Below, in pieces: positions 11,114 through 64,000 of a DNA stretch of 64,000 nt. The notes under the pieces were generated by a model. That model was given only the letters and a program-made list of their open reading frames with translations, had not been told where the DNA came from and made no database searches. A program made the translations under genes and the position numbers. The stretch comes from Haplodiscus bocki (taxonomy: Eukaryota), in contig OZ296648.1 in the NCBI GenBank assembly GCA_965655095.1, forward strand, positions 89,590,001 through 89,654,000. The letters are read 5' to 3'. Numbering within the stretch: the first letter of the stretch is position 1; each line of letters starts with the position of its first letter.

Positions 11114-12716
11114 TGTCGCAGTATACTTGCGAAGCCTGCGGATTAGAGCTGCAGAAGAAAACAACATTCCCAGACCCTCAAGGGAATTGATGAGCTGTAA
11201 ATAAAACACAATAAACCTAATATTTCATATTTATCCTAATTTTGATGTTACTGATCCGTATCATATGCGGATCACCCTAGTGAACTGATCCGGACTAATA
11301 CGGAACCGTTACGGAACAAACGGATATTCACAGAGCTTTTACTTCTAAAAGGTGCTACATTTGTAATAACTTATTCATTTTATTTGATTTACATCCACCT
11401 TTTGAGTGTGATTAGCTTGGCTTACTGTGGTAAAGTGCTATCAAATTGACTCTCGGAGTGAATATTTGTTCTGTACGCGTTCCGCCGCTACTTGTCTAGT
11501 GACGTCACAATCTTTCTTATAGCTATACTGTGCTGCAGTGCTATGGTGAATACGGAGTGACTCCGTATTCACTCCTAATTTGAGCACGGCTTACTGAATT
11601 AAAACTAATACTACTAGTGGCTACGGAACTGTTCCGGATACCACTAGTAGCTACTAGTCGGAACGAGGAGTAAACTAGTAGTGATACTAGTTTCTCCTCA
11701 TTTCCAAAAGACCAAAAGCCTAAATAATCAAGTGATGATGAAATGAAAATGAAAATGATGAGTAAATGTATTTTTGTACCAAAGTCATGTATTTCGTATT
11801 TTATTTTATTTTCTTCATTTTTTCCATTTTAAGTTGTTCTATTTTCCTTTCCCAATTAAGGAAATTAGTAATACCAAGACTGTAAACAATATATCGGCGC
11901 GGGAATAAACACTTTGATGTCCACCTCTGACGGATTAGGACCGTCCATTTTCTGTCGAAAGATAGAAAAAGCGCGTCCTATGATGGAAGAGGTGGATGGA
12001 AAAGTTGTTTATTTCCCGCCAGAGTCGGCATTTCTGAATTTGATAATTTGATTTAATGATGTACGAAGTACTTTTCCCTATTTGTACCTTGACTTGGCGG
12101 ATAGACAATTATGTTTGGGGCCAGGAAAAGGTATATATAGGAGAAATGAATGTACAGGAGACACAATTTTTTTATTATTGTAAAGTACTGATGATAATAT
12201 TCCAGTATTGTATTTCCCTTCGTTGTTAATCAAAACTGTTAAACTACCAAAATTGATTTTCTTTCTGAAAAAATAATCAAGTTTTACTGACTGATCATTA
12301 TTTTTCCCGTAGAAAATGACAACTCGAAACAAGAGAAAGTTGGCAGCATTGAATAAGGAAAACTGTGAAGAACATCCTAGGAGCAACTTGGCACAAAACT
12401 CAAAACGCTCCTAGATCACAGGAAGACTACATAACTCAAGTTTCTGAGGAAATTGAGGGAAGGGTCACAAAAAGGTTGTCAAAGGAGTTCAGTAGAACAG
12501 AAAACCGCATTCTAGGTGCATTAGCGCGTCTCGACAATTTTCTTGTGATCCCGCTACTACCGAGCCACTTCGGAACCACTCCAGAGCCCTCCCGCAACGC
12601 ATTAAGTACAAGCCAGGGAACGAATGAGGACGACTCCCAGAATGATCCTCATCCTGAAGCGGGCCTCTTCCACGGTCAGATGACACAAAACTCTGGCCCA
12701 GAATATGACCACGACA
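11114..12716 (+). repeat. 5' LTR of family A (1603 bp, TGTCGCAG...CCACGACA)
   Basis: Colinear with the reverse complement of 54496-56197 from TGTCGCAG to CCACGACA. It has TG...CA ends with a TGTCG/CGACA inverted repeat and a TATA-like TATATATAG at 12132-12140. Confidence 0.85.
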
Positions 12717-13947
12717 TGGCGACAGGAGCCACAGAACAGATTTGTAATCGCCACGACATGACAAGAGTTCACAAGGAAGTCACATACTGCTCCCCGTGTA
12801 CATCTTCAGAAAAGCAGAAACAGAACCGTTCTACCAGTCAACCGCAATTCCGCAGCCAGAACACCCCTGCGACGATCGAGGCAGACCAAATTTTGTTGGC
12901 CCTTCAGCAGTTGGCAAATAACCACAACTCTGCGAACTTTCATAATAACATCAACAGAACTTCCAAACTGCCAAAATCACTCACCACAACGATGCCCACG
13001 TTTGACGGGAAATCGGAGAAATTTGAGCTGTTTGAAGATCTATTCCAAACGCGCGTCAAACTTCATAATCAGCTGACTGAAGATGACAGAATCAATTACT
13101 TCCAATCTCTCATGAAGGGGGGTGCGCTACAAACCTTTAAAAACATTAATGGCCCCACCCGAGAGATTTTGGGAGAAATTCTAGCAGTTTTCCGAAGGAA
13201 TTATGTAAAACCCCAATCGATGGCAACAGCGAAGCACAAATTCCAGAAACTCGTCTTCAACCCAGCAAATCAAATTTAGTAGATTTTCTCGATGAACTTC
13301 AAAAACTGGCCAAAGACGCATTGGGAATAGCTGCCCATGCCATCGTTGAACAAATCATTTGTGCCAAAATGCCACCACACCTGAAGAAATCAATACATCA
13401 GACTCACTTCGAGAATGGCGCATATGAACAGATTGTTACGCACTTGGAAAGGGAACTAGAGCCGAACAAATTGTAAGCACCTGATGAGCTACAGATAAAC
13501 ACTGTAAGCCGACAACTGACAAACGTGAATGCTGACAGACCCAAACCAACGTGCCACCACTGTGAAAAACCAGGGCATTTTAGAAATCAGTGTCACCTGT
13601 TGAAAAAACAGCGAGAACGAACTGAAATTAATCAAAATAATCCTTGAAACAAAAACACTGACGCCAATAACTCTAACCCAAACAGCAACGTCAACAATAT
13701 TAAAAATAACCACAACAACTACAAAAACAGTAAAATAACTGAAAAGAAGCCACAAACTGTTTAAACACCCTGCGAGACAAGTGGCAAAACGAACCACTCC
13801 GCAGACAGATGTTATGTTGGAGCCAATGCAGCAAACAGGCCACTTTCCTGGAGGAACAAACCGGAAGGACAGAGTGGACATCATCAACAGGACGCACAGA
13901 ACAGTATAACTGGTTGTGTCCTGGCCACAGCCCAACATCTCAACTAA
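12316..13947 (+). pseudogene. gag: Gypsy gag pseudogene (capsid-like region + two zinc knuckles)
   Basis: ATG at 12316 (MTTRNKRKLAALNKENCEEHPRSNLAQN), frameshifts near 12400 and 13275, and in-frame stops. Retrotransposon gag motif MPTFDGKSEKFELFEDLF; CHHCEKPGHFRNQC at ~13552-13593; second degenerate knuckle CETSGKTNHSADRC at ~13771-13812; TAA at 13945-13947. Confidence 0.88.
12717..12728 (+). promoter_or_regulatory. Primer binding site (TGGCGACAGGAG), tRNA-Leu-like
   Basis: Starts with TGG (complement of tRNA CCA) directly after the LTR-terminal CA. It resembles the Leu-type PBS TGGTGTCAGGAG; the tRNA identity is inferred. Confidence 0.65.
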
Positions 13948-47400: not shown

Positions 47401-48348
47401 TTAGTGGCGCCATTGTTACAGCGTATGTCATTGTGAATTTATTTTCTGTTTCATACTCAACGTTTCTTCGCTTCTCGCATTGCTACAAACTGGTTTGAAA
47501 CACGCAGTGCAATGGGAGTTGCCCTAAATTCGTCCAAACGAGAACTCGTCTGAGCTCACAGCTTATTAAGTCTGAAAATACCCTTTTTTAAAAGAACGAT
47601 ACAATTCGTTTGCAACATATTATACATGAAACATATAGATACAACAAACAGAAACTTTGTTAGCTGTCCGGGTGTCAGTTTATCTACAGTTTCGATGAAA
47701 ATTTCATGCCATTTGGAAACTACTTTACTGATGACCACAGAAAAATTTACCCGATTTTTTAAGCTGTCTTTGTGGAGAAATGCAGATAAATTTGCCTGCT
47801 ATTACATGTGCCGCAAGTAAAGCATTTATGCTTCTCAGGTAATGTTTCATGCTTTTCATTTCGGGGGTTTAAGTCATAGACGATTTCAGAGCTGATCAGA
47901 AAGTATCAGTGACGACCAAAATTTTCTGGACTATTATTACACGACTTAACTAACTGTTAAAAAAATATGACAGCTTTCTTCATCTACAATATGCAACAAA
48001 TGTTTTATAAAGGTGACACGGTATGGCCTTCTATCAGATGTTGTTCATCGGGAAAGTGTGTCTTCAGCACAACTTGCAGAATGATTGAGTCTAAGCTTCA
48101 AAGCAGTATAAGTAAAGACGATAAAGTAAAGTGCGTAGTTATCAATCCTAAACACACGCACCGTCATTTGATTTGCTTGAGCATACCGCCTAAATGTTTG
48201 GAGTTTATAACACATTTGAAGATTCTACACAATTCGTTTGGTAAGTTGTGGTTTTTCATGAGAAAAAAACATTTCTTGTACTTATAATAATTGTTACAGA
48301 ATATCCTCCGTTGAGTTGAATTATGCAATCAAAGAATCAGCCACGCCA

Positions 48349-49044
48349 TCCAGGTTGACGTCTCTGAGACATTCAGTGCTGAACAGCTCTCATTCAGGAT
48401 AATTTCAGGTCTGTTTCAGCGCTGTTCATTACCTGAAAATCTCTGAACAGCGTTGATTCAGCTCAAAACATCGCTGATTTTGACGGATTCAAAATGACAA
48501 CTTTCAGTTAATTTTTCATATTATTCGAAATTCTAGAAAAAGTAACTCAATTTTGAGGCACATAATTCAGATTTTCAGCCCACTTTGCGAATAGAAGTGA
48601 ACAACAATTTTGTTGTCCAATCTTTTTGCGGTCTAAAGGTTGAAAAATTACTCGAAAGTTTGGGTTTTCTGTTACTGGTCAGGTAACAAAACTGATAAAG
48701 TTCAATTTTTCAAAAGCATTTTCTCGCATAGTCGGATGAACTTCGAAGACCATTTCAGAAAATTTCGAGTTTTTTCCGTCAATTTCCAGAATATTAGGAG
48801 AAATTTACATTTTTGAAAACAAAGAATGCATTTTAACGACTACTTCAAGCGTTTTCATCACTTCTGACTACGTTATCACAATGTGATATTCCCATCTGCA
48901 TGTTTTAATATCAGAGATAATTCAAAGAAAATCATAACTGATCAGCATTGATGTTTTTCATGTTCTCTGAATCAGCGCTGAAAAATGTCAAAACTCTGAA
49001 AGAGCGCTGTTGAGAGCTGGTTATCTCAAGGATTTCAACCCGGG
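48349..49044. mobile_element. MITE-like non-autonomous DNA transposon with imperfect TIRs
   Basis: Left end TCCAGGTTGACGTCTCTGAGACATTCAGTGCTGAACAGC; reverse complement of right end CCCGGGTTGAAATCCTTGAGATAACCAGCTCTCAACAGC. Subterminal TCAGCGCTGA-type palindromes; no ORF. Confidence 0.65.
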
Positions 49045-49056
49045 ATACTTTATATC

Positions 49057-52000
49057 CCCGGGTTGAGATCTCAGAGATATTCAGCGCTGATAAACTTTGA
49101 TTCAGAAATTATCAGCTCTCATCAGAGCCACCTCAGTTCTGATTAAACGCGTTAAATTACCCGAAAAGTCTGAAGAGCACTGAAAACACAAATTCTCAGA
49201 GGCAAAAATCAACACTTAACAGCACTACTACATCGCTGATTTTTTTCTAGAACAGAGCCCAACAGTAATGATTTTTTTCGGATCCAGAACATAAATTTCA
49301 TCATTTTTTCTAAATTTTTCGAGGTACCTCTAAGTTGAACCAGAAAAACCTGATTTTCGAATCACATTGGAAAAAGAAGAAAAAAATACAATATTATTTT
49401 GTTCAATTTTCCTACGTGCCAAAGTTTGATCAAAAACACAAATTTCGGAACTGTTGGTACCACCAAAGTGACAAAACTAATTCATCAGCTCGATTGAATG
49501 AATTTTAGCAGTTTTCAAGTTTCCCAACTTTTCAAGCTTCATTTCTGGATAAATTTGGAGACGAATGTTTGTTTTTACATACTGAGATAAAATGTTCATC
49601 AGCAGATTTTATGATCGGACCGCTATTTGACTATTGTCGCAGGCCGGGTAGGGGGGAACATTGTATTACTAATGCTTGAATTTAATTCTTTTTCTAGTTC
49701 CAATTTTCTTTCTAGCTGAGTGCTGCAGGTGATTAGTATTCCTTTTGTTAGCTAAATCAATACAGCCGTGGCGCCGCAGCAGTTGTTTTGTTTATTGAAA
49801 ATAAGTCTCAGGGGCTTTTATTGATCTACTTTCAGGTGCCTTGCAGGCCTCGTGAACAAAGATTGCGTAAGTTCAAAGCAAGGACTTTATGAGCGACGGA
49901 GGGAAAATAGAAAATGAAATAATCAATTATTCAGTCAGCCGAGAGAATAAATATAATCAAACGGGAAATGAGAGAACTGCGCTAATGGATGATGATTCAG
50001 GCTTTAGAAGAGCGCTAAAAGTGGGAAATAGAAATAGTAGTCATCTATTCCAGCTAGTTCAACGCGATACAGTTACACAAATTTCACTGCAGATTTAACC
50101 AAATTTTTTTCATCTACAAAATTATCCCTCAAAAATTTTTACTTTAACTTCCAACCTTGTACAAAGTCCCAAAATTTATAGAATTATCTACTCAACAAGC
50201 ACTTCGACAAATGTAATCACAGAAAATAAAAAGATCGCTGATTATCATGGAATTGAGACAATTTAAAAGAAATTTAAAGACTTTTACAAAATAATCGGCA
50301 TAAATAAGATCAATCCAAAATACAAATGGCAAAAATGTAAGATGTCCGTTATAAATTCTTCAATTTTAATGACATACAAATAACAAGGATATAAGATATT
50401 CTTTATAAAACTCTCAATGATTGATTGAGATAATTTTTGGAGGTAAAGTAATGTCTAATAAGTTTTTTTTCTTTAGGCCAGATAGAAGACTTTTGTTCTT
50501 CTATTTTTTCTGGGCCTGTTTTCTGGAGAAGTTTTGGCTTTTTGTTGTTTTATTTTATTAATTAACGTTATGTCATATATAACCTTTTGTACTTTGGTCT
50601 ACACTCGGTACTGGCTTCCGCGCAGCAACCGGTTGTACTCCTATTTTCCCGATTGTCCAAACCGTGAATAAATCACCGGATTTATTGGCGGGGTTTGATT
50701 TGTTTTAATTTTGTCTATTACTCAGGTGATAACTCGCTCTTTAGCGGTAACCCGGTGATATTTTGTTAGTTCCCTTTCTTTCCAACCGAGAACTTTGTCT
50801 AGCGGATGTTACGGAAGGGATTTATGAAATATTAAAATTGATCAGAGAGATATACTCTGTCTGAACTAAGAAAACTGTTTAACTAACGGTTACCGTTGAT
50901 GGGACTGGGTGATTTTTTGATAACTCAGGGACTCTCCTCTTTTTAGTCTGACTTGCGAAGGGATTCAGTAGGGAATTTTAAATCAAAGCAAAGAATGAAT
51001 TATGGAAATCAGGAATGGACGGTTTCTGCGTATTTAATCCATAACTCGGAATTTAGAATAAATTCTAAAGACCATGGAAGCAGACGAGGTGAGAATGATC
51101 TATGAGTAATGTCAATTCTCTTTGCCTAAGAACCTCGTGGGGGGTCGTGCATATTTAAGGTCCACTCATGATTCAGAACTTGCGTTCATCCACGGAACCC
51201 GCACACGCCAATGTCGAAGCTAGCGTCAGTGGACATCGTTTAGACTCCAATGGCAAGAGTATGTAAAGGTAAGTGAAAGGAAGGGAATTTTTCTAAGTCA
51301 GAAGAGAATTGGGACTTAGAATATTATTGGAGAATTGAATTGGTTTTGCGACTAAGACAGAATTTAGAATTGTCTTAGAAAAATTTTGCAGGATTGAATT
51401 TGTTTTGCGACTAAGACAGAATTTAGAATTGTCTTAGAAAAATTTTGAGGAATTGTAGTTGGACTTAGAATAATTTCGTCCAAGAGGAGAGAGAAGAGAA
51501 ATAGGACTTAGAAAATTTTCTCCAAGAGAGAAGAGGAGTTGGACTTGGAAAATTTTTGTCCATAGAAGTAAAAGGGAGAAAGGGAGTTGGACTTAGAATA
51601 ATTTTGTCCAAGTAAAAGGGAGAAGTAAGGTAAGCAAGTCAGAAGAGGAGTAAGGCGTCCCGTCCGCTGAACGGGAAAGTGAGTTATGTTCAAGTCCGTT
51701 TCTCAGAGCGGCTCCAAAATAACATCATGCTGTCATGACATGCAACCAATAGGAAAAAAGTTTGTAACAGCCATGAATTGGTAGCAGGAGCCAATAGGAG
51801 AAAAGCTCGCGTTAGAATTTTTTGTAAAAAATATTTATGCAACTCCATTGGTTTATATCTCCAGCTTTTTTATTCATTTTCTATGCCCTACGACAACATC
51901 AGCAGTGTCCCCTCAAAAGGTTAGCTTTAATTTATCATCTTTTAATTAATTAACGTTTAAGCGTTAAGTATAACGCGATACTATGCTATTAGATTTTGAT

Positions 52001-52140
52001 TACCTCAGTTACCTTTGAAAAGACCAGTGTTGACTCAGAGGGATTCGGCACTCAATCAGCCTTGTTTAACATTTTACAATCATTTTTCAGAGCTACAAAA
52101 ACTTCACGGAACAATTCTCAGACAGCGTTGATTAGCGTTA
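49057..52140. mobile_element. Second MITE-like copy, interrupted by the family B solo LTR
   Basis: Starts CCCGGGTTGAGATCTCAGAGATATTCAGCGCTGA. The same CAG-G-TGA/TCAGAG motifs resume at 52020-52140, beyond the LTR. Right end uncertain. Confidence 0.5.
49635..51980 (-). mobile_element. Solo LTR, family B (2346 bp), 4-bp TSD CTAT
   Basis: CTAT at 49631-49634 and 51981-51984. The minus strand starts TATCGCGTTATACTTAACGC (cf. TGTCGCGTTATAGCTAACGC at 34610) and ends CCCCTACCCGGCCTGCGACA (cf. CCCCTACCGCGTGCGACA). Internal 59-bp tandem repeat at 51335-51447. Confidence 0.85.
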
Positions 52141-52579
52141 CTAATTAGTGTATGCTTCAGAAACAAAGAGTGGAGGAAATTACTCTTACTGAACAAAAAA
52201 CACAACAGTTCAATTGAACAAACAATATTTTTACAGAATGTCGAAACTTTTTTTACAACGCTTGTGATTTTGTTATTTCGTCCAAAAATTGATTATTTAT
52301 AAGGTAAGAAAATTTATGAATTTTAAAAAGTAAGAGAAATTACGCTTTTATAAGGTCAAAAAAATTACAATCTAAACGGTAAGAGAATTCGCACTTTAAC
52401 AGTTTTTTTACTTTCAAAAAGCAAAGGTTCTAGACAAGAAACTGTTATTGAATAAACAAATTCTAGAAATTTAGCAACAATAAGTTTTTTCGATTGAAAC
52501 TTTATGATTTTTTACTTGTAAGAATAACGTTTCCTGCTTTGTTTCGCTGTTTCCAAACATACACTATCAATGGTTGTGT

Positions 52580-53450
52580 CATGAAGTGAAACTAGAAGTT
52601 TCGTCATTCAAATTTTTTCTTGGCCACCAGAGAAGAATTATTACATAAATATTTCTGTAGTAGAGCATAATATTGATACTTTGGAGCTTTGGAGTCATTA
52701 TTTATAAGATATGAATGATTATGGAATGTAAAAGAAATGAAAAGTAAAACGCATTTTTGTTGAAATAGAGAATTTTGGAAAGACTGGTCGACAGTTCTAA
52801 TCACGTCAAAATGGTCAAAAAACAAATGACTGATCAGTTTTTCTACATCTTGATTTCCTTGAAGAGAATACTAAAATTAATAGAAACAGATGATGGAAAA
52901 CATTTTTTGCATAAATCTTTTTTTTTTTGATTTCATAAAGATGTAGGATTTAAAAAGTATAGTAGAGAGACTTCTAAGGGAGCAATATTTGCAAAAAAGT
53001 TTGATGGAACATTTTGTAATGTGTTTGGGAAATCAGTTCTTAAAAAATTAACTCTAATTGGATTGAGGAACCATCTACTTTAACGAAATATTATGACAAA
53101 ATTGTACATAGTTCTACTAACTTGACTCCAGTTAATTTTTCGGTGCAAGCTTAAGAAAAATAAATTGATTACAAGTTTAAAGATAAGCTCAGTGACAAGT
53201 TAAGAGAACAGCGCAAGAAAAGAAACTCGAACTATGGTGTGTGAGATTCATTTGGAAGTGCTGATACGAGATCCGTATTCTCTAAAGGAGATGCTAAAGA
53301 CTGGAGTTATGAGCTTCCTTGAATTGCAGAAACTACATATGATACAATTCAAAGTTACGGAATCAAAGACTTTGCTTCAATGAAGAAGTGTCAGGAAGCA
53401 TTTTTGAAAAAGAATTCTCTTACGAGAAAAAAATGGGAGTAAAATGAAAA
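52580..53450 (+). pseudogene. Maverick/Polinton-type retroviral-like (rve) integrase pseudogene (copy 2)
   Basis: Manual translation: LWSHYL*DMNDYG...IENFGKTG...KLIETDDGKHF...YSRETSKGAIFAKKFDGT...NWIEE...YDKIVHSSTNLTPV...FSKGDAKDWSYE. This is the rve core pattern (TDxGxxF; AERFNRT; NW; YNxxxHSSxxxTP) plus the Polinton FxKGxxxNWSxE tail. Confidence 0.72.
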
Positions 53451-54457
53451 AAACAAAAAAACTACGACTTTAATAATCAAATTGAAAAAAGTCATTTTTT
53501 ATGAGTGATTTTACGAGGAGTATCAATTCAAATTTTTGTAAATAGAATTTTTAGATTAGTGTAATATAAAACCAAATTTCGCATTTCAAGTGGAAGAATA
53601 TTTCAATAATTTTTCAAATTGAGTAGAAACTGGGACTAAAAATTCTTTAATAACGAATTTCGCGTCGAACACTTGAATGATTTTACCCAATTAGTACAAA
53701 ACAAAGCTAAAATTGATTTTAATTTATGCGATATGCTTTATCGGATTAAATAAAACAAGTTTCTTAAAACATTGCTCAGATGAAGCACTGATGTTTCACA
53801 TTTTTGTCTGCAGGTTTGAAAATGTTGCCGCTAGAATCATTGGAATACACCTGCAGGTGCAACTAATATTTTCTTCTGTAGTCTTCTCTGGACTCAATCA
53901 TTATATTGGAAATTTTTCATTTGTGAAAGATTGTCAAAAGTCATTTTTTCAAAATAGGCAGATATGTGGTGTTTTGTAGGGGAAGATGGGTACTACGAAA
54001 ATAAAACGTTTGAAAATTACTTAACCGTCTGTGACAGAAACAATCTTTTTGTCTCTTTCGCTAAAGTTTTATTTCAGAGAAATACCTACTGAGTGCGTTT
54101 AAATAATTTATTTTATAAAGCAGATAAATTTCTTAGACTTCTGTTCACCTTGTCATGTCAACATCTGCAAAAAACTTAGAGTTATAGAACTTCCTAACAA
54201 AAAATATAAAACATTTCTTAGGTTTTTGCCAAGGTCTTGGAGTTCTTGGTGAGTTTATTTTTCAGAAGATTTTGCAGACAAGTTCGAAAATTTCTATGGA
54301 TTATTGCCAGAAGAACAAAATTTTTCAAGATATTCGCAAGGCGAACAATATAATAACACGTTTGTAAACACCCGGAGTTACCACCACATGAATAACTTAC
54401 TATGGGCACAAGTATGTCGACAGCCGTCTTACGGGTAAAACCAGTTATAAGAAATTA

Positions 54458-54898
54458 TTAGGATTGCCCTGCGCTCATGGATGGACCATAGTATTTGTCG
54501 TGGCTATCTTCTGGACCAGAGTTTTGTGTCATCTGGTTGTGGAAGATGCCTGCTTCAGGTTGAGGATCACTCTGGAAGTCGTCCTCATTCGCTCCCTGGC
54601 TTGTACTCAATGCGTTCCGGGACGTCTCCGGAGCGGTTCCGGAGTGGCTCTGAATTAGCGAGTTTATGAGAAAGTCATCAAGACGTGCTAATGCACCTAG
54701 TATCCGGTTTTCTGCTATGCCAAACTCTTGTGACAACTTTTTTGTGACTCTTCCCTCAATTTCTTCAGAAAATTGAGATAGGTAGTCCTCTTGTGATCTG
54801 GGAACATTTGAATTTCTTGCCAAGTTGCTCCTAGGATGTTCCTCACAATTTTCCTTGTTTAATGCTGCCAATTTTATCTTGTTTCTTAGAGTTGCCAG
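54458..54898 (-). pseudogene. gag: Gag N-terminal ~134 codons carried inside the solo LTR, reading into flanking DNA
   Basis: Open frame from CTG at 54898 (position of the gag ATG) through ...QNSGPEDSHD, where homology stops exactly at the LTR end. 12 flank-derived codons and a stop at 54458 follow. Confidence 0.85.
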
Positions 54899-56197
54899 TT
54901 CTTCGGGAAAAGTGTTTTCAGTGATAACTAATTGATTGTCTTTCCTTGAAGGGAAAAAATCAAATTTGTGTTTACAGTTTTCAGTAGCGGAAAATAAAAT
55001 AAAAAAATAATACTGGTTGATATCGTCAGGACAGCGGAGTAATTTAAAGGTTCTGAAGAGTTCTCAAGTTCCCCATTTGTACTTTCATTTCTCCTATTTA
55101 TACCTTTTCCCGGCGTGAAACATAATTGTTTACACGCCAAGTCAAGGTACAAATAGGGAAAAGTACTTTATAAATGATAACGTCAAAGTTAAAAACGCCG
55201 ACTCTGGCGGGAAATAAACAACTTTTCCAGCCATCTCTTCCCCCATAGGACGTGCCTTTTCCATCTTTCGATAGAAAATGGACAGTCTTAATCCACCAGA
55301 GACAGACATCAAACTGTCTATTCCCGCGCCGACGTATTGTTTACAGTCTACAAAAGTATAGTCCATAAATGGGAAAAGGAAAGATATTTCCTTACTTAGG
55401 AAAAATGAAATAAAAATATGAAATGAATGACTTTAAATATGAAAAAAAAATGAAAAAAGTAAATAAATATAACCCTCGTGCTCGCCTCATCATTATTAAT
55501 AACAATTCATTAGTCTATACTCTTTGGAAATGAGGAGAAACTAGTAGCAGTACTGGTTTACTCCTCAATGGTACGAGTAGCGACTGGTTGTTTCCGGATA
55601 ATTTCACTACTAGTGGTAGTAGTCTGTGCTCAAATGAGGAGTAATTCTGCAATCATTCCGTATTCACTACAGCACGGCAAAGTAAGAGCAGTGTTGGTGA
55701 CGTCACCAGACTAGTAGCGACGGAACACGTACGGAACAAATATTCACTCCGAGAGTCAATACACTTGAAATCAGTCATTGTGCTAAAAGTATCAATTTAA
55801 TCAAAATTTCTAATTAAACTGCACTTCTTGCAATTAATCAAAACCGTCAGACTCGTTGAAAAAGGTGGATTTATATTGAATATTTAAAAGATTATATTAA
55901 TATAAAAATAGCACCTTTTAGGTTGATAATGCTCTATGAAAACTTGTTTGTTCCGTAAGAGTTCCGTCCTAGTACCTATCAGTTTGGTTGCGTATAAATA
56001 CGTACCAATATATATGTGCTTTGTCAAGGATACGTATTAAATACGTATCCGTATATATGCACAACAGTTAAAAGTACATGTTATAATGATAGTTAAAGTT
56101 TGATTAAAAGTATGTAATGTTTGAGTTTTTCCTGAGCATCAGGGTGTCTTTTTGGCTGGTAGGGACTGGCCACATGCCTCGCAGGTGTGCTGCGACA
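54496..56197 (-). mobile_element. Solo LTR, family A (1702 bp), 5-bp TSD GTATT
   Basis: GTATT at 54491-54495 and 56198-56202; minus strand TGTCGCAG...CCACGACA; colinear with 11114-12716. Confidence 0.92.
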
Positions 56198-58956
56198 GTA
56201 TTGATGTCTGGTACCTATAAGAGCAATTTAGGAAGCATATGATCTTTTCTTCAGGTTTTGTTTTTTTTTCGTGAGAATACAGCAGTCGTTTCCAAACCAA
56301 GCATTGAGTATCTGTTCAATCACAAGGAAGACCGGATCCAAAGAAATCATATGAGTTACCTCCAGAAAATTTTTGTACCTTGTCGTATTAGTGTTTTGAC
56401 AAATTAATTCGTTAAAAAGCACATAATACCTTGAGGAAATATTATTTCTATTAAATTTTAGCTCCAGGGCTTGATTATGATAAATTTTTGAACAAATGCG
56501 CAAATCATCAGATTGTTTCACAAATAGGTAACATGTAAGTACTTGATCAACAGTTAACTTACCACGGCTCCAGGGCTGGGCATGAGGATAATTCAGAAAG
56601 TCTCATGGGCACCAAAGTAACGTACTTCTGGCCCCAAGAGTATCTATAGACCCTTATTAAAGTACCCTTGACTCCCCTGGTCCAATCTTCGTCCCAATAA
56701 AAATGCCCTATTTCATTTCTGAGTGGTCAACCCGGGCACAGCATATGCTGCTAGAGTTTATTAATTTCAAAGATTATTGCAAAAATTTTCCGAAAACTTA
56801 CATATCTCTAACTGTACAATAAACATGAACAATTAACTTTATTTTTACATGATTTTCACGAATATGTCGATATAGCTTATGACCGGTGATTTTCGAAGGT
56901 AGAATCATTATCTGCATTTTTTTTAATTACATCAATTTCAGTCAGTCCCTCCTCAAAGTTGGGTCAAATGGCTCATTTCTGTAGTGCTCCAAGTATGATG
57001 GACTACCAAAGTAGTTATTGTTACAATGTTACGAAGCTGCGGCTTACAAGAGTTCAGAAAATCAAAACAAAATAGAAAAGAAAAGCAAATAAATCTTGTA
57101 CGTTTTTCCAGGGAAGACAAGTTCCATCTTAGACAGGAGCTTTTTTACTAAAAAACTCCTCCTTTCAGGTCCTTCAGAAAATTGTACAAAGATTCCGACT
57201 CCTGTAATGGTCACAGCAGAGTTACAACGTGGAGACGTTCTGCTCGCAGAAGTTCTTCTTAACGAATTTCTACATCAATAAAAGTGATCCTTTTCAAGGG
57301 TTTTTTGGTTTCAAAACTTCCGGCTCAATTTGTTCTCTAGTCAACATGTTCTACAAAAACAATCAACTTAGACAAATTTTTACCAGTTCTTCTGATAATC
57401 AATCAAAACTGAGAAAATTCATACGAAAACACCCAATTCACCGATTTATTTTGATAAAATGCTTGTGCGGAACTTTTTTACAAAAGCTTGGAGAAATCAA
57501 TTTTTTTGAGATTTTATTAATTCGTTTGTAAAGTATTTGCCAATAGCGTCGCATTATTTTTTTGAAAGGAGGGAAAAGTTTCCAGATCCGAACGTTTTTG
57601 CACAAAACCATGTTGGTGTTAGTTCAGATATTTTAAGAACTGAAGAAATATGGCACAGTACATACACTTTTCAAGCACTTTGCAAGTACTATTCAGTCGT
57701 GGAACGGGCTTCTAATTTTCGACAAGTGTTTTATCTCCCTTTTCGAATATATTCAAGATTGCAGCTACTCTCAAGTTTTTATGTTTACCCGAATGTTTTT
57801 CTGTTTTTTATATTTTGATGTCGAATTGGTCCCATTTCCCCAGCATTCAAAAAAGTGAGGATGCACCGTTGGAACTCTAGACGCAGTCCAAGTTGACCAG
57901 AACCTTGAAAAATTTGTATTTCCGTGATTTGACACAGTGTTTTTTTTGTATTTTCAAGTGGCGAGCTGTGCTTGACGATATCGGTAATAATACACATTGA
58001 AAAAATATCTGACCAGGTTTACTTTTGCTTTCGCAGTTATGGCTATTGCTCTATTTCCATTCAATGTTTTGGTGAGGCTGACTGATTTGTTCAAACGTTT
58101 CAGGTGATTCAATATCAGGTTAAAACTTCTGTTAGACAGCATGATTTTATGGTAAGTAACTCGCTCGAGTTCGGCTGCTTTTTTGACTTTGCTGACTGCA
58201 TTAGCTTATTAGGATGTAGGTTTCAATTAGCGAAGTCTTTTTGCGCTTTCGATTTCATCATGCTGTTAGATGCTGCGAGAACTGTCCTTGGAGGTTGAGT
58301 GCCGTGACGGCGTGATCCTCTGGGCAGGATCGCCTCAATTAAGTCTGCTGAGTTTGTTAGAGCACGATAAGCATTCTGAAGAGGAAATTAGGTGATATTT
58401 TGCTGAATAAGGGCATTACTGGCAAAAAAATGGCCGCCTTAGAATAATAACAGCGAAAACGAATCAAAATTTTGACCAGCTTGTTCACCTTGCCATTATC
58501 GTGGAAAGTTCTGTAAAATTTGGCGTTTTTGGCAAAATCTTGTAGTAGGATGTTATCCATTGATTGTAAATTCCAAGAGAAATCTTACCTCAACGAGCAC
58601 GCAAAAAGGAGCCTCGCGATTAAATGTGATCCTTCTGTGCAATTCATACATCAACGGTCTTCAACCTTAAACTTTTGAAACAAAACTACGAACAGACCGA
58701 CCTCCTAAGAAACTATTCATATATCAAATAGAATTTCCAGATGACCTGTTAAATGTTTCGCTCTGGAAACTTTGCAGAGAACTAAGCAATGACAATTAAA
58801 AGTATTGAAGTGTTATCAAAAAACTACGGATGCCTCTCAAACTTTTTTGTTATTTAGTTGCCTGTGAATTCGAGGTTCTCTATGGAAGAATTAACAAAGT
58901 ATTCTTTTTCAAACAAGAGCAGAGCAGGAACTCTTAATTACTACAAAGCCTAAGAA

Positions 58957-60479
58957 ATGAGCGATTATTTTCCTGTGACTGTGACTGAACATTGGGGAAG
59001 TTCGATTTCAAGACCAGTCTGTTCGACAATTGAGAAGTTCTCAACAGAAGGCTTTTTGAGAAAATCAACAGAGAATGCTGATAAGTTATTCCAATCTTGG
59101 AGAACAAGTGGTCAGACATATATTATTCCTTCGGAACCAATAGCAACTCCAAACGGCCCAGATGGTGAGAAAGAGTCTCGCAGCTGTGGTATGAAAGCAG
59201 TGAAAAGGGATTCAGTATTGGAGGGAGATAAAGCAGAAGCTACAGTGCATAATTTCTTGGCAAAGTCTAATCAGCATGCTTTCATTTTGCAAAAATTTGA
59301 TACTTCAAAGTGGAGAAAAGTTTTCAAAACTCTTTCATCAACAACGAGAAGCTTTGCTGATGAAATCAACGAGATGGGCGACATTGAGATTGATTTTCTT
59401 ATTTTGCATGCTTTCCTTGGAGTAGTTGCTATCGAATGCAAAGGTGTGAAAGAATTCCAGCAACGAAGGTACACCGACAGCAAAAGGCAACTAAAAAAGT
59501 TGACATCTTACTAAAAAACGTTTTAAAAATGGTAGCTTCAACAGGAAAACAAACTTATTCAATACCTATTGCAAAGGTTGTAAGCTTTCCTTTTGTGCAA
59601 ATGAAACAGGGCGTGAAAAACCCTTTTAATTTGGGACAAATCGATTTAGAATTACGACCTGAGTTATGGTGGGACCATCTCTTGGATCAAAAGGGAACAG
59701 AAGTTAATAAATTTGTGACTGACACTATTTATGAAGAAGTTGTGATTTTTCTTTTGGGTCTTTACAGCATGACTTCAAATTCGGAAATTTTTTCAGAGGC
59801 AGGCTTTTGCTCCGGTTATGCGGAAGATTTTTCTTCATCAACTATCAACCGATATTTATGGCGATTCTTGAACTTTTTGCTTCCAAGGCAACTACATTTT
59901 ACGCTACACCTGGACAACTTGTTTTTCCTCAACCCTGGCCAATTGCAAGTTATGAAATGCCAAGCTAACAAGCAGTTAATAATGGGAGAATCTAAAACAG
60001 GCAAAACATTTCTACTTATGGAAAGGGCCTTTCATCTTTTGATGGAAGGTGAATCGATTTATTTTCTGATTCCTAAAGGCTCACGTAATGATTATAAACA
60101 CTTGTTGCGGATAAGGTCGGAGCATAATGAGGATTCTTTTAAATTTTTCTCTCACGGAACTATCACTCGGGATTCTCTGGAACAGCTGCAACACTCTACG
60201 GTAATTATTGACGATTTACAAAACTTTTTCTCACCTGATGGAGGTATTTCGGACCAAAGAGGGCTCAACCAAGGTTTTCGAACTTACGAAGGAAACTCTG
60301 AATGCACGTCGCTGGATTTATGTGAACTTCTACGAAAAGTCCCAAAAGCTGTCGTTGCCTCAACCCCAATCAGTTCATTTGAGTACCCCGTGCCGGATTA
60401 TGAGCAACTACTTTTGAATTCTGGATATCAGCTCCTTCGGCTGCGTGAGCAATACGCGACTCTCAAAGAATGGAAATAA
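58957..60479 (+). CDS. Intronless NERD (PD-(D/E)xK) nuclease fused to an SF1-helicase-like P-loop domain, split by one -1 frameshift (joined product ~506 aa)
   Basis: ORF1: GDKAEATVHNFL...EIDFLILHAFLGVVAIECKG...KRQL (NERD). ORF2: IPIAKVVSFP, Q motif LNPGQ, Walker A GESKTGKT, Walker B VIIDDLQ, motif IV-like LREQY. Junction CT-A AAA AAG at 59493-59499; no other disruptions. Confidence 0.75.
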
Positions 60480-62773
60480 GTGAACGCGGACGCAAATGTA
60501 TTTTATGCTTTTTCACAATAATAACCTTCACCTTAACTTAGCTTTCATGCATTCCCAACAAAAAATGAAATCCCAATTAAACAGATTATGAAAAATCTTC
60601 AATTTTTATCGGTAATCTGTCTGTTCACATGTTCACATCAAATCCAAGGCATGCTCTCAAATGCGGCACAGAAAGAAAGAAGGACGTGAGTTGAAAAAGT
60701 TTTACATACATATATATTTTTACTCGTATTTACTATTTACACTATCCTTTTATCTATTCTGTTTACTTCTTCAAAACTCAAAAAACCCGTTATCATGCTA
60801 TCATGAAGTGCTGATCAAAAAACTTGACATGAGTAAAACAGACTGAAGCTCAAACGTATAAACAGTTTACATTAAAACCGTGAAAACAGCGGTAAGCTTC
60901 AGCTGGCAGACAAGTTTCATATACAAGTAGTCTCTAATTTTGTTTTTTTTTCCTAAGGCTCACAGACTGTTTAACATGAAAAAATGACACTTTAGGATGC
61001 TTGCATTGTAGCTACTTTGTTAAAGTTAATCCACACCAATATTCCACGTTTGGTGTCTTGACTGATCCAAATCAATATCCAGCGATATATGCTCAGTAAA
61101 ATAAACGAACATCGCTTTTCAACGTTTTTGGATGAAACCGTTGAAAAGCGATATTTAGTGCAATGCAATTTTCTGGCCTTGGAAAATTGGAAAATACATA
61201 GGGCAAGATGAATTGCATTGACATGTAATTTCATCGCTTGGAGAAAGAGACAGTGCAAAACTGTTTCAGTTTTTTCTGCGATTCAGTAATGCAATCTTTT
61301 CAACATCAATTTCCATCTACCGTGAGTGTACTGACGTTAATTGGCTCCAATAACTGCGATAGCCATGACAGTTTTCACATCTGTTTACATCTAATAAACC
61401 ACAAAGCCAACCCGTAGACAGCAGAATATTTTTTCAATGGATGATTGTCAAAGCATTTTTTTTCAATTAATCACATCGTTTTGTAACAATGATAATGCAG
61501 GCCGCCTCCAGAGGTAACTCTTAACCTCATATGTGGACCCATGATGTTTCAAAGTATCAATAGAGCATATGCTCACTGATTATCAGCTATTTGTGAAATA
61601 GAGTATCAGAATTCAACAAACTTACTTTTTTCACATAACTCACATGTCAGCATGTGACCCTTTGCAGAAGGTTGTGAAAATGTGCTTCATGGTAGCCAGA
61701 TGTTGAGATGTTAATTGACGTGGAGCACCAAAAGCCAATAAGAGCTCAACGATGGTCAGAAAAGCGTCATACCACAAATTAGGAGACGCACTTTTTCATA
61801 GCTACTACGCTAATACTTAAGCTCTGCAGTTAGAGGAACTTCACTACGAATAAGAAGCAACGCCTTGATCTGCCTTACTCACTGTACCCAGTGTAAAACA
61901 CAATTTTTCGAATCGAAACACTACTAGCGATAAACACAATCTAATCAAAAAAACAAAGATGAAAATCATATCACAAAATGAAGTTTTGAATTTGAATGAT
62001 ATTTTCCTTAATTTCTGAAACACTTCAAGCGGACGCTCATACTTTTTAAAAATAATTGAGAAGAAAATGGCCCACAGATTTAACGACACTTATACACTGG
62101 AGCAAGGATAACTTTAAAAAACTGAGTCTGAAACAAAACGCTTTTTGGAGGAGAAGAATGCAGATAGTTTTCGTCAACATATCGACTTGCCGACTGAAAA
62201 GCTGACTGATTTTACTCAATCGTAATTCAAATACTTGTTTCGATCCATCCTAAACTCCCCAGTGGCCGAGATCAAGCGCTTCCTTCTCTTAAGCGCAGCT
62301 ATCGTCGACCAATCATCGCACATATTGCGAGTTAAAAGCGTTTTTCAAAATATGGACCATTTTAGAAGATTTCATACGCACGCATTGATGGCTACCGTTG
62401 GAAGTCCTCAGTGTTGATATACGGTTTGTGGCAAATGTGGTTGAAATAATTCATTCCGAAGAACATAAAAGATCATTACCAGTCAAAATACAAACATTTT
62501 GCGCTTTTCGTAAAAACGCAGCAGACAGATTTTGATTAAAAAATGTGTCCTCATCTTAGCATTTCTGAAATTGAAACTTCTTTTTTTTTCAATGTCTTGT
62601 TAGATTGGAGGATAATCAGAGAAAAAGTGATGTTAAGAGATGCATAATCAGGAGAAAAATTGAAGCCTTTAACCTTAGTTTCCCAGCTTTGTGATTAAAA
62701 CGATAGTGATTGCCACCAGAGACCCTTGGGAAACGTTTGTTTCTGTATTCAAAAATAACTTTCAAAAGAGTAT

Positions 62774-64000
62774 TGCTCCCAAGCGTATCACTGCTTGCAG
62801 ATGGCGGACCAACGGTCAGTGGAAATGCTTGCTTTCAATTTTGCTAGCAGAACTTTCGCCTACAGAAGACTTGCACAAGGTCTTAGCAGATCTGTGTCTG
62901 CTTTTTCGAGTTTCATGCGCGAGTACTTGGACCCAGTTGTCAAAGCTGACCAATGTGCTCAATACGTGGATGACATTGGAATTGCAGCCAACGATGCTAC
63001 GGATCTTACCCGGAACATTCGGGCAGTCTTCAAGTGCATTCGCCAAGCAGGATTGAAGCTGACAATTGAAAAGTGCCGTTTTGGAGTCAGACAGGTTGAA
63101 TTCTTAGGCAGAACCATTTCATCCGAGGGAGTATTACCACAATCTCATAAAATTCAAAACTTTTTAAGCAAATTGAGATTCCCCAAATCCAAGAAGGCTT
63201 TGCCGCGCTACCTGGGCTTCGTAAACTACTACAGAAATTATATTCCCAGAATGGCTGAAAAGCTCCACCCATTCTATAAACTTTTGAAAGCAGAAGTCCC
63301 ACTCAACATCACCTCAGAATTGAAAGAAACCTTCGATTCAGTCAACAAAGCACTGAGTGATGCGTGTCAATTAGCACTTAAACAACCCATTAATGGAAAA
63401 CAGTTAGTCTTAATGACCGATGCAAGTTTCAGGAGTGCAGGCTATGCTCTTATGATTGAAGACAACCCAGATCAAAAAATCCAATCAAAAGAAAACGTAT
63501 GCACCAGTCGCGTTTGGATCAAAAGTCTTTTCCCCCGCACAGCTTAAGATGTCATTTTACTCGAAGGAATTTTTGGCAATCTACATGGCATTTCTCGAAT
63601 TTGCACACATTCTGTGGGAAACATCAAAACCGACGATTGTATTGACGGACAACAAATCAGTTACCCGGTTTTTCCAGACGAAAGCCATTCCACCATCCCT
63701 GTGGAACGCATGTGATTATGTGCTGCAGTTCAACTTTAAAATAGCACACATCGCTGGTTCAGTTAACACAGCGGCTGACTTTCTCTCAAGATTGGAACTG
63801 AAAGTTACTGAGAAAATCCATCTCAAAATCCAAGAAGATGTAGAAACAACGCCCATAGAGGTGTCAACATCTTCCTCAGATGTCGCAGATGAAGAACAAT
63901 TCTTCTTCGCGCAACCAGATAGTCAGGATGAAACTGAAGAACAAATCCTACTAAGGAAAGAACAATCTCAGAAAAATGCAGCAGATTGGGTAGTAAACCA
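62774..64000 (+). pseudogene. pol: Ty3/Gypsy pol fragment: reverse transcriptase + RNase H, 5'-truncated, runs off the window
   Basis: CSQAYHCLQ...RLAQGL...YVDD...KC.FG..QVEFLG; RNase H LMTDAS. Frameshift near 63490, then YSKEFLAI, LTDNKS and GSVNTAADFLSR. Confidence 0.93.

Follow-up and report, generated by a model that had tools for sequence, protein, structure and literature searches.

Fusions of a nuclease to a helicase recur in bacterial anti-phage immunity and in the vertebrate Schlafens. Nhi, a nuclease-helicase immunity protein, is activated through the phage's single-strand DNA-binding protein (SSB) (PMC10732053). Defence islands are enriched in NERD domains, and a NERD-helicase has been predicted as a partner of Tiamat (bioRxiv 10.64898/2026.09.30.754977). 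The defence provided by ZwsA is abolished by mutating its E...D...ExK residues (bioRxiv 10.64898/2026.04.06.716636), and a eukaryotic NERD protein acting on RNA exists, TbLrRP (PMC12702573). In the literature that we searched, no paper on animal NERD-helicases was found. Here, we analyse a gene of this kind in a 64,000-nucleotide stretch of DNA from Haplodiscus bocki (assembly GCA_965655095.1, contig OZ296648.1, positions 89,590,001 to 89,654,000 of the forward strand), hereafter called the window, in which an earlier note had proposed an intact, intronless NERD nuclease-helicase gene as a candidate defence effector. We consider it probable that the best explanation overall is another one, namely that the gene is a transcribed, recently disabled member of a host family in which a NERD domain is joined to half a helicase.

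A spliced transcript and a frameshift in the nuclease domain

The region 58957-60479 on the forward strand, which had been taken for a single intact reading frame, consists of two open reading frames (ORFs) in different frames, 58957-59514 (185 residues) and 59436-60479 (347 residues); the earlier reader had evidently crossed the frame change. In a codon alignment, all aligned paralogues retain 18 nucleotides (nt) at the break site, mostly CAA CTx GAC AAA GTT GAT, whereas the window has 17 (CAA CTA AAA AA- GTT GAC), which corresponds to a 1-nt deletion. The deletion lies ~17 codons past the ExK motif, still within the nuclease domain. It leaves the NERD domain of the window interrupted, with ORF 1 ending at 59514, inside helix alpha-2 and before the fourth core strand KVVSFP.

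Contigs of four runs, three large ones from sample S1 and a small transcript-like one from sample S2, called X4 (82 million letters, of unrecorded library type), were aligned to window positions 58001-64000. The A-run at the break shows no indel relative to the window in contigs of all four runs (three S1, one S2), and the deletion is therefore not an assembly slip, an origin that we ruled out since four runs from two samples agree with the window. The three S1 runs cover the whole of the aligned stretch, whereas X4 covers only 58856-60561, which is the coding exon with ~100 nt before it and ~80 nt after it. One X4 contig extends 51 letters further, ahead of 58856; the 30 of these that are shown have an exact match at 47807-47836 and no other match in the window. 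On the acceptor side, 58840-58857 is a pyrimidine tract ending in AG. Because its coverage is restricted to the exon and it contains a splice junction, X4 is in effect RNA. These contigs show that the window copy is transcribed and spliced. Together with the splice-site sequence, they also show that the gene, described earlier as intronless, has an 11,019-nt GT-AG intron in its 5' leader. The features of the locus are listed below, where A2 is an alignment of 14 N-terminal domains and RecA1 and RecA2 are the first and second lobes of the helicase.

47786-47838 (+): 5' non-coding exon, minimum extent, from the 51-nt loose end of the X4 contig; it ends in ...CTCAG, followed by the donor GTAATG
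47839-58857 (+): intron of 11,019 nt, GT-AG, with a pyrimidine tract at the acceptor, from the X4 junction 47838/58858 and the end sequences
58858-60561 (+): terminal exon, from the transcript-like X4 contigs
58957-59514 (+): ORF 1, frame 1, 185 residues, N-terminal region and NERD-like catalytic core, ending in a premature TAA; matches at least 16 paralogous loci
59224-59247 (+): GDKAEATV helix with the first conserved acidic residue (E at 59236-59238); this Glu (E86) is invariant in A2
59386-59409 (+): EIDFLILH strand with the catalytic Asp of PD-(D/E)xK; its E, I, D and F do not vary in A2, and the segment models as a beta strand
59431-59442 (+): IECK, the ExK part of the PD-(D/E)xK motif; E152 and K154 are invariant in A2
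59491-59499 (+): frameshift site CTA AAA AAG, with the A-run at 59493-59498, from the codon alignment and the contigs of four runs
59499-60479 (+): homologous continuation in frame 3, 326 residues and a stop, with the rest of NERD, a short linker and RecA1
59919-59954 (+): LFFLNPGQLQVM, the Q-motif region of superfamily 1 (SF1; UvrD-type), LNPGQ; position 1 of the Pfam UvrD-helicase profile starts here in paralogues
59985-60008 (+): GESKTGKT, Walker A (P-loop)
60201-60221 (+): VIIDDLQ, Walker B (motif II), where Asp replaces the catalytic Glu (DExQ to DDLQ)
60432-60479 (+): C-terminus, LLRLREQY (60432-60455) to the stop, where relatives have motif IV (LRGTC or MRCTS)
60517-60524 (+): AATAATAA, possibly a poly(A) signal of non-canonical form; X4 coverage ends ~37 nt after it

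The active site had been called apparently intact. Its elements are indeed found in the expected order and spacing, AE at 59233-59238, EIDF at 59386-59397 and ECK at 59434-59442, but the copy that carries them is frameshifted. The helicase motifs quoted earlier (LNPGQ, GESKTGKT and IIDDLQ) are all present on the forward strand. The stop codon of the window copy is at 60477-60479, seven codons past LLRLREQY. At 60112, within RecA1, the window has a T and all contigs of the four runs have a G, an Ile/Arg difference that is either a haplotype difference or a consensus error.

At the two ends of the transcript, an A-run where X4 coverage stops suggests a poly(A) site near 60561, although contigs cannot prove a 3' end, and the spliced leader holds three short upstream ORFs before the start codon (the 5' exon by itself has two). 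Window positions 47782-47822 match five other places in the genome with 83-94% identity over 35-64 nt, none of them near a paralogue, and the leader exon may overlap a low-copy repeat. The 5' exon was not found beside the paralogues in a genome search.

The NERD and RecA1 domains in the wider gene family

We searched the window's own 1.5-Gb genome, whose contigs are named C1, C7, C10, C11 and so on (the window locus is on C1), using both window pieces and an N-terminal domain profile as queries. This census gave ~16 paralogous loci plus decayed fragments. The loci are distributed in a C1 cluster at 89.6-90.3 Mb that includes the window, several places on C10, a C7 cluster at 27.4-29.3 Mb, and single sites at C1:72.2 Mb and on C11. 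Paralogues with intact ORFs of 539, 569 and 946 residues read through the break point of the window, and most paralogues have a single coding exon for this region. The paralogues are 30-60% identical and arranged in tandem clusters, the DNA similarity between them is limited to coding sequence, and no terminal or long terminal repeats were found around the window gene. Because of these properties, and of the leader intron, the window gene is a member of a host gene family and not transposon cargo, a retrocopy or a recent horizontal transfer. The earlier suggestion of retroposition does not agree with the spliced 5' exon or with the RecA2 exon of relatives, and a processed pseudogene was ruled out by the gene's own 11-kb leader intron. 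Horizontal acquisition, as a recent event, is contradicted by ~16 paralogous loci nested among full-length relatives from other assemblies, and the expected signs of transposon cargo, shared flanks and terminal repeats, are missing. Beyond this genome, a profile search of 1.84 billion representative proteins returned 712 clusters at E <=0.001, 56 of them at <=1e-30, many with 650-900 residues.

Since the frameshift splits the NERD domain, a Pfam search with the window pieces alone gave no significant match. In a wider Pfam scan (n=14: 12 family proteins and the two window pieces), NERD was the most-matched family, with 8 of the 14 sequences at E <=0.05 and a best E of 1.2e-5, as the earlier note had anticipated. 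Relatives score 22.2-23.0 bits for NERD (PF08378), three from coral metagenomes lying just over the gathering threshold of 22.1 bits. The catalytic Glu, Asp, Glu and Lys are invariant across the 14 N-terminal domains. The fold was modelled and searched on an intact paralogue (L026, residues 1-262) in place of the window copy. The AlphaFold model has an alpha-beta-beta-beta-alpha-beta core, with a mean predicted local confidence (pLDDT) of 78.7 and a predicted template-modelling score (pTM) of 0.80. In an exhaustive structural search of this model with VIA-align, the top rows were nearly all PD-(D/E)xK nucleases (Z 5-7.9), including Can2, Card1, McrC, NucC, NucS, Hjc and type II restriction enzymes. 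In comparisons of shape, the N-terminal domain reaches template-modelling (TM) scores of 0.67-0.69 with clusters of hypothetical proteins from molluscs and cnidarians, and ~0.5 with bacterial NERD-helicases; Foldseek returned nothing for it at E <=0.001. The model thus supports the prediction that the N-terminal part is a NERD-like PD-(D/E)xK domain, the moderate Z (<8) speaking for the fold and not for a function.

The C-terminal part corresponds, as proposed earlier, to the first lobe of an SF1 helicase, with the Q motif, Walker A and motif II in place. Paralogues match positions 1-41 of the Pfam UvrD-helicase profile at 23.1-23.5 bits (cut-off 23 bits), versus 12.5 bits for the window piece. 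A profile of sixteen full-length relatives of ~650-730 residues (alignment A4) matches the helicase domain of human SLFN11 over both lobes (profile positions 311-657) with an E of 3.3e-10, and SLFN5 with 6.3e-5. A profile of mostly truncated forms (alignment A1) gave generic P-loop matches only, and Foldseek of the whole paralogue model against the PDB likewise found only generic RecA/P-loop proteins (KaiC, Rho and PriA).

We use the name subfamily A for a derived clade of nine loci on C1 and C10 that includes the window copy; the intact 569-residue ORF, at L026:3328-5034, is another member. The earlier observation that a second RecA domain is absent is borne out: the ORF stops at the motif IV position, and none was found within ~13.5 kb downstream, where tblastn at E up to 10 (60480-64000 and 10 kb more) detected no RecA2 on the strand of the gene. 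A whole-genome search with a RecA2 profile gave 15 matches, none of them beside subfamily A, and single-sequence searches gave none there either. All five subfamily A copies with an intact 3' end stop 3-7 codons past the motif IV position; the exception within the clade is a copy at C10:21.7 Mb that bears an internal stop and continues past this position. By comparison, the C7, C11 and C1:72 Mb copies have a separate terminal RecA2 exon 7-13 kb downstream, and in relatives from other assemblies a single ORF spans the entire protein. The replacement of the Walker B Glu by Asp also extends beyond the window, with DDLQ in every subfamily A sequence that covers motif II. DExQ is found in the copies on C7 and at C1:72 Mb and in the majority of full-length relatives, with DD occurring in a few of the latter as well. 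In SF1 and SF2 helicases, ATP hydrolysis and translocation depend on the interlobe cleft, on the arginine of motif VI and on the Glu of motif II. Since subfamily A has no second lobe and no motif VI arginine, and its motif II Glu is replaced, its members are presumably not motors, and a subfamily A protein cannot be a translocating helicase.

This architecture is old. In a maximum-likelihood tree, subfamily A, sampled with seven copies, is recovered as a clade with 100% support and a long stem, nested among the two-exon copies of the same genome and full-length relatives of 655-694 residues. Pairwise ratios of nonsynonymous to synonymous substitution rates (dN/dS) are 0.2-0.4 in both conserved blocks, with dS up to ~1-1.8 and higher ratios in a few very young pairs. 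The age of the clade and these ratios indicate that the truncated architecture has been maintained by selection for a long time, and the family is under purifying selection; the earlier note had named neutral evolution as a point to check. The sole trace of RecA2 near subfamily A is a decayed opposite-strand remnant at C1:89718401-89718730. The decayed fragments on C1, with this remnant among them, suggest that the truncated clade originated in situ from an ancestor of full length.

Several other loci are worth describing. Decayed fragments with multiple stops lie in the C1 cluster at 89769540-89769989(-), 89749894-89750623(-), 89998417-89998825(-) and 89718401-89718730(-). RecA2-like ORFs occur elsewhere, at C8:82942195-82942848 (L029:1462-2118), C11:9226163, C4:8781479, C3:83142223 and C413:60455. 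The one on C8 has 218 residues and a Met start, and begins at helicase motif IV. Whole-genome searches found no NERD or RecA1 match on C8 or near the other sites, and these ORFs represent either the final exons of helicase genes that are more distantly related or second lobes that stand alone. Linker length varies widely between paralogues. In the 946-residue paralogue (L025:3790-6627; C1:90141789-90144627), the linker contains tandem Ser/Pro-rich repeat units, and the Q-motif/Walker A region is partially duplicated, with a GECGTGKT copy followed by a complete GEARTGKT lobe. Two family copies on C7 (28403572-28404314 and 28421375-28421973) have their N-terminal domain split between adjacent frames near profile positions 155-158, and they appear to be frameshifted too. 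Finally, a young inverted pair on C1, L016/L006 (89.843-89.847 Mb, -) and L018/L007 (89.969-89.973 Mb, +), has a dS of 0.01-0.09, with the NERD and P-loop parts in separate ORFs ~3 kb apart, owing to a linker intron or an insertion. Both paralogues of the pair (C1:89.84 and 89.97 Mb) are matched exactly by a second loose end of X4, and at least one of them is therefore also transcribed.

Around the gene, the window has the character of a transposon graveyard. Its other ORFs of at least 150 residues with a Pfam match are all transposon-derived, in line with the earlier description; two further ORFs of at least 150 residues gave no Pfam match, and an Rfam scan of the window gave none. A 304-residue ORF at 12365-13279 (+) matches DUF1759 (E 8e-6). 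This domain is known from gag-like proteins of BEL/Pao-type retrotransposons, and the ORF fits the graveyard setting. A very high-copy repeat occupies 62600-64000, where the summed depth of S1 contigs rises from ~16-64 to 10^4-10^5. It includes an ORF (62795-63547) with reverse transcriptase and RNase H-like domains (RVT_1, E 9e-16) and is a fragment of an abundant retroelement of the long terminal repeat (LTR) type.

Status of the window copy

A disabling deletion seen in four runs, together with intact paralogues elsewhere in the genome, is the signature of a duplicated (non-processed) pseudogene, and we infer that the window copy is likely to be a young one that is still transcribed. Its branch has a dN/dS of ~0.28-0.30 (our own three-taxon arithmetic on pairwise values), and this ratio, with the low level of decay, places the deletion recently relative to the age of the copy. 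The window contains, at 47786-60561 (+), a two-exon host gene with a non-coding 5' exon, an 11-kb intron and one coding exon. Its mRNA is made and spliced, and normal translation would stop at 59512-59514, yielding a 185-residue fragment that lacks the last core strand.

Several points weigh against this interpretation. The 507 codons hold no further stop, and of the 62 positions that are otherwise invariant just 6 differ, for the most part by conservative changes. The data do not distinguish a loss of very recent date from use that continues to some extent. In frame 1, a slippery A_AAA_AAG heptamer is left at the deletion, on which a -1 shift would restore the homologous reading. The evidence for expression consists of assembled contigs of a single run of unrecorded library type. 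Apart from these points, the nuclease activity, the gating by nucleoside triphosphates (NTP) and any immune role that we infer for the family would fit its intact paralogues and not the window copy.

Continuing use could take two forms. A -1 ribosomal frameshift or transcriptional slippage on CUA_AAA_AAG might still produce a 507-residue NERD and RecA1 protein at some rate. The heptamer stands in the zero frame exactly at the break, the shifted product reads QLKK-VDILL as in the paralogues, the downstream frame is open for 326 codons, and the branch dN/dS is ~0.3. However, no stimulatory RNA structure is predicted downstream of the slippery site (z-score 0.35), six A's make a short run for slippage, the rest of the family does without a shift at this place, and an open downstream frame is equally expected of a young pseudogene. 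Cellular -1 frameshifting is also rare in animals, and altogether we regard this alternative as quite improbable. Somewhat less so, but still unlikely, is a role for the transcript in truncated or non-coding form, as a 185-residue NERD-core fragment, a regulatory RNA or a decoy for paralogues. The transcript is spliced, and its contig depth is similar to that of paralogue contigs. Premature stops in the last exon should escape exon-junction-dependent decay, and the stop in this transcript is of that type. However, ORF 1 ends in helix alpha-2 and lacks the fourth core strand, making a stable fold unlikely to judge from the model, while three upstream ORFs precede the start codon and there is no sign of selection for the truncated form.

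The remaining alternatives concern what the locus is. A break in a homopolymer run, a classic site of error, would be expected if the frameshift had arisen in assembly and the gene were intact; since contigs of four runs and two samples, the transcript-like run included, match the window without an indel, we give this almost no credence. A lone long coding exon amid transposon remains, whose nearest characterised architecture is bacterial, could also be transposon cargo, a retrocopy or a recent bacterial transfer. Against this stand the spliced 11-kb leader intron, the lack of shared flanks and terminal repeats, paralogues that are 30-60% identical, tandemly clustered and under a dN/dS of 0.2-0.4, relatives with a separate RecA2 exon, and atlas clusters that put the family in Mollusca and Cnidaria. 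We find such an origin very improbable. A transcribed pseudogene of recent date therefore remains our preferred reading of the window copy.

Possible role of the intact relatives and comparison with known systems

In intact members of subfamily A, the P-loop lobe most likely survives beside the nuclease purely as a nucleotide-binding module for regulation or interaction; the proteins would bind nucleotide, and the lobe would regulate or interact with the nuclease. More tentatively, and with a lower probability, these intact members may be unrecognised nucleic-acid effectors of animals, which combine a NERD nuclease, a single hydrolysis-impaired RecA lobe of the Schlafen type and a fast-evolving disordered linker under purifying selection. 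The lobe might sense nucleotide or nucleic acid and gate the nuclease; alternatively, the protein might find its partner in trans among the RecA2-like ORFs that stand alone elsewhere in the genome. On the same tentative footing, the wider invertebrate family of NERD-helicases might be the equivalent in animals of bacterial Nhi-type immunity, and related to the helicase module of the Schlafens.

The family is a worthwhile, moderate lead, although the window locus is not the intact intronless effector that had been proposed; transcribed and with a confirmed frameshift, it should not be annotated or pursued as such. An old clade that kept the nuclease and the P-loop lobe under selection and dropped the second half of the motor is a natural experiment on the non-unwinding roles of helicase lobes, and the genome supplies intact, transcribed paralogues suited to testing.

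How does the family compare with known systems? Bacterial NERD-SF1 helicases have their domains in the order seen in the family, with a NERD-like PD-(D/E)xK nuclease at the N-terminus and, behind it, an SF1 helicase whose Q motif is of the UvrD type, and clusters of them are neighbours of the family in the protein atlas. In PADLOC, the best match was to the DRT-associated RTasNERD-Hel (E 1.5e-9), spanning NERD and RecA1 in the sequence P0031, with Nhi and AbiO at E 1e-4 to 1e-5. The Nhi and AbiO matches were partial and centred on RecA1 (E 2e-5 to 1e-3), and the window piece matched AbiO at 9.7e-4 and Nhi at 8.5e-3. Unlike the bacterial proteins, the window gene is an animal gene with introns, and the matches to them are weak and mostly to the P-loop lobe. 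With neither RecA2 nor the catalytic Glu, subfamily A is unable to unwind or translocate in the manner of Nhi.

ZwsA, a bacterial RNA endonuclease, and the trypanosome rRNA-processing factors TbLrRP share with the family a NERD domain with the E...D...ExK set. They have no helicase lobe, and their domain partners are of other kinds (VHS/S4, transmembrane). The group III Schlafens (SLFN11, SLFN5, SLFN13 and SLFN14) resemble the family in having a nuclease followed by an SF1 helicase; the Pfam SLFN-g3_helicase model matches four family members weakly, and PF09848 remains below its cut-off (17.8 versus 24). The nuclease of the family is, however, of the NERD PD-(D/E)xK kind and not the Schlafen core, and subfamily A has the first helicase lobe only. 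Closest by features in the ESM Atlas are mollusc and cnidarian clusters annotated as NERD domain or hypothetical protein (0.99 and 0.97 for P0012), which appear to be the same family. Most of these proteins have 650-790 residues and a complete helicase, whereas the clade of the window has the truncated DDLQ form, and the window copy itself is frameshifted. If the proposed role is true, it is these invertebrate NERD-helicases that would stand in animals where Nhi-type immunity stands in bacteria.

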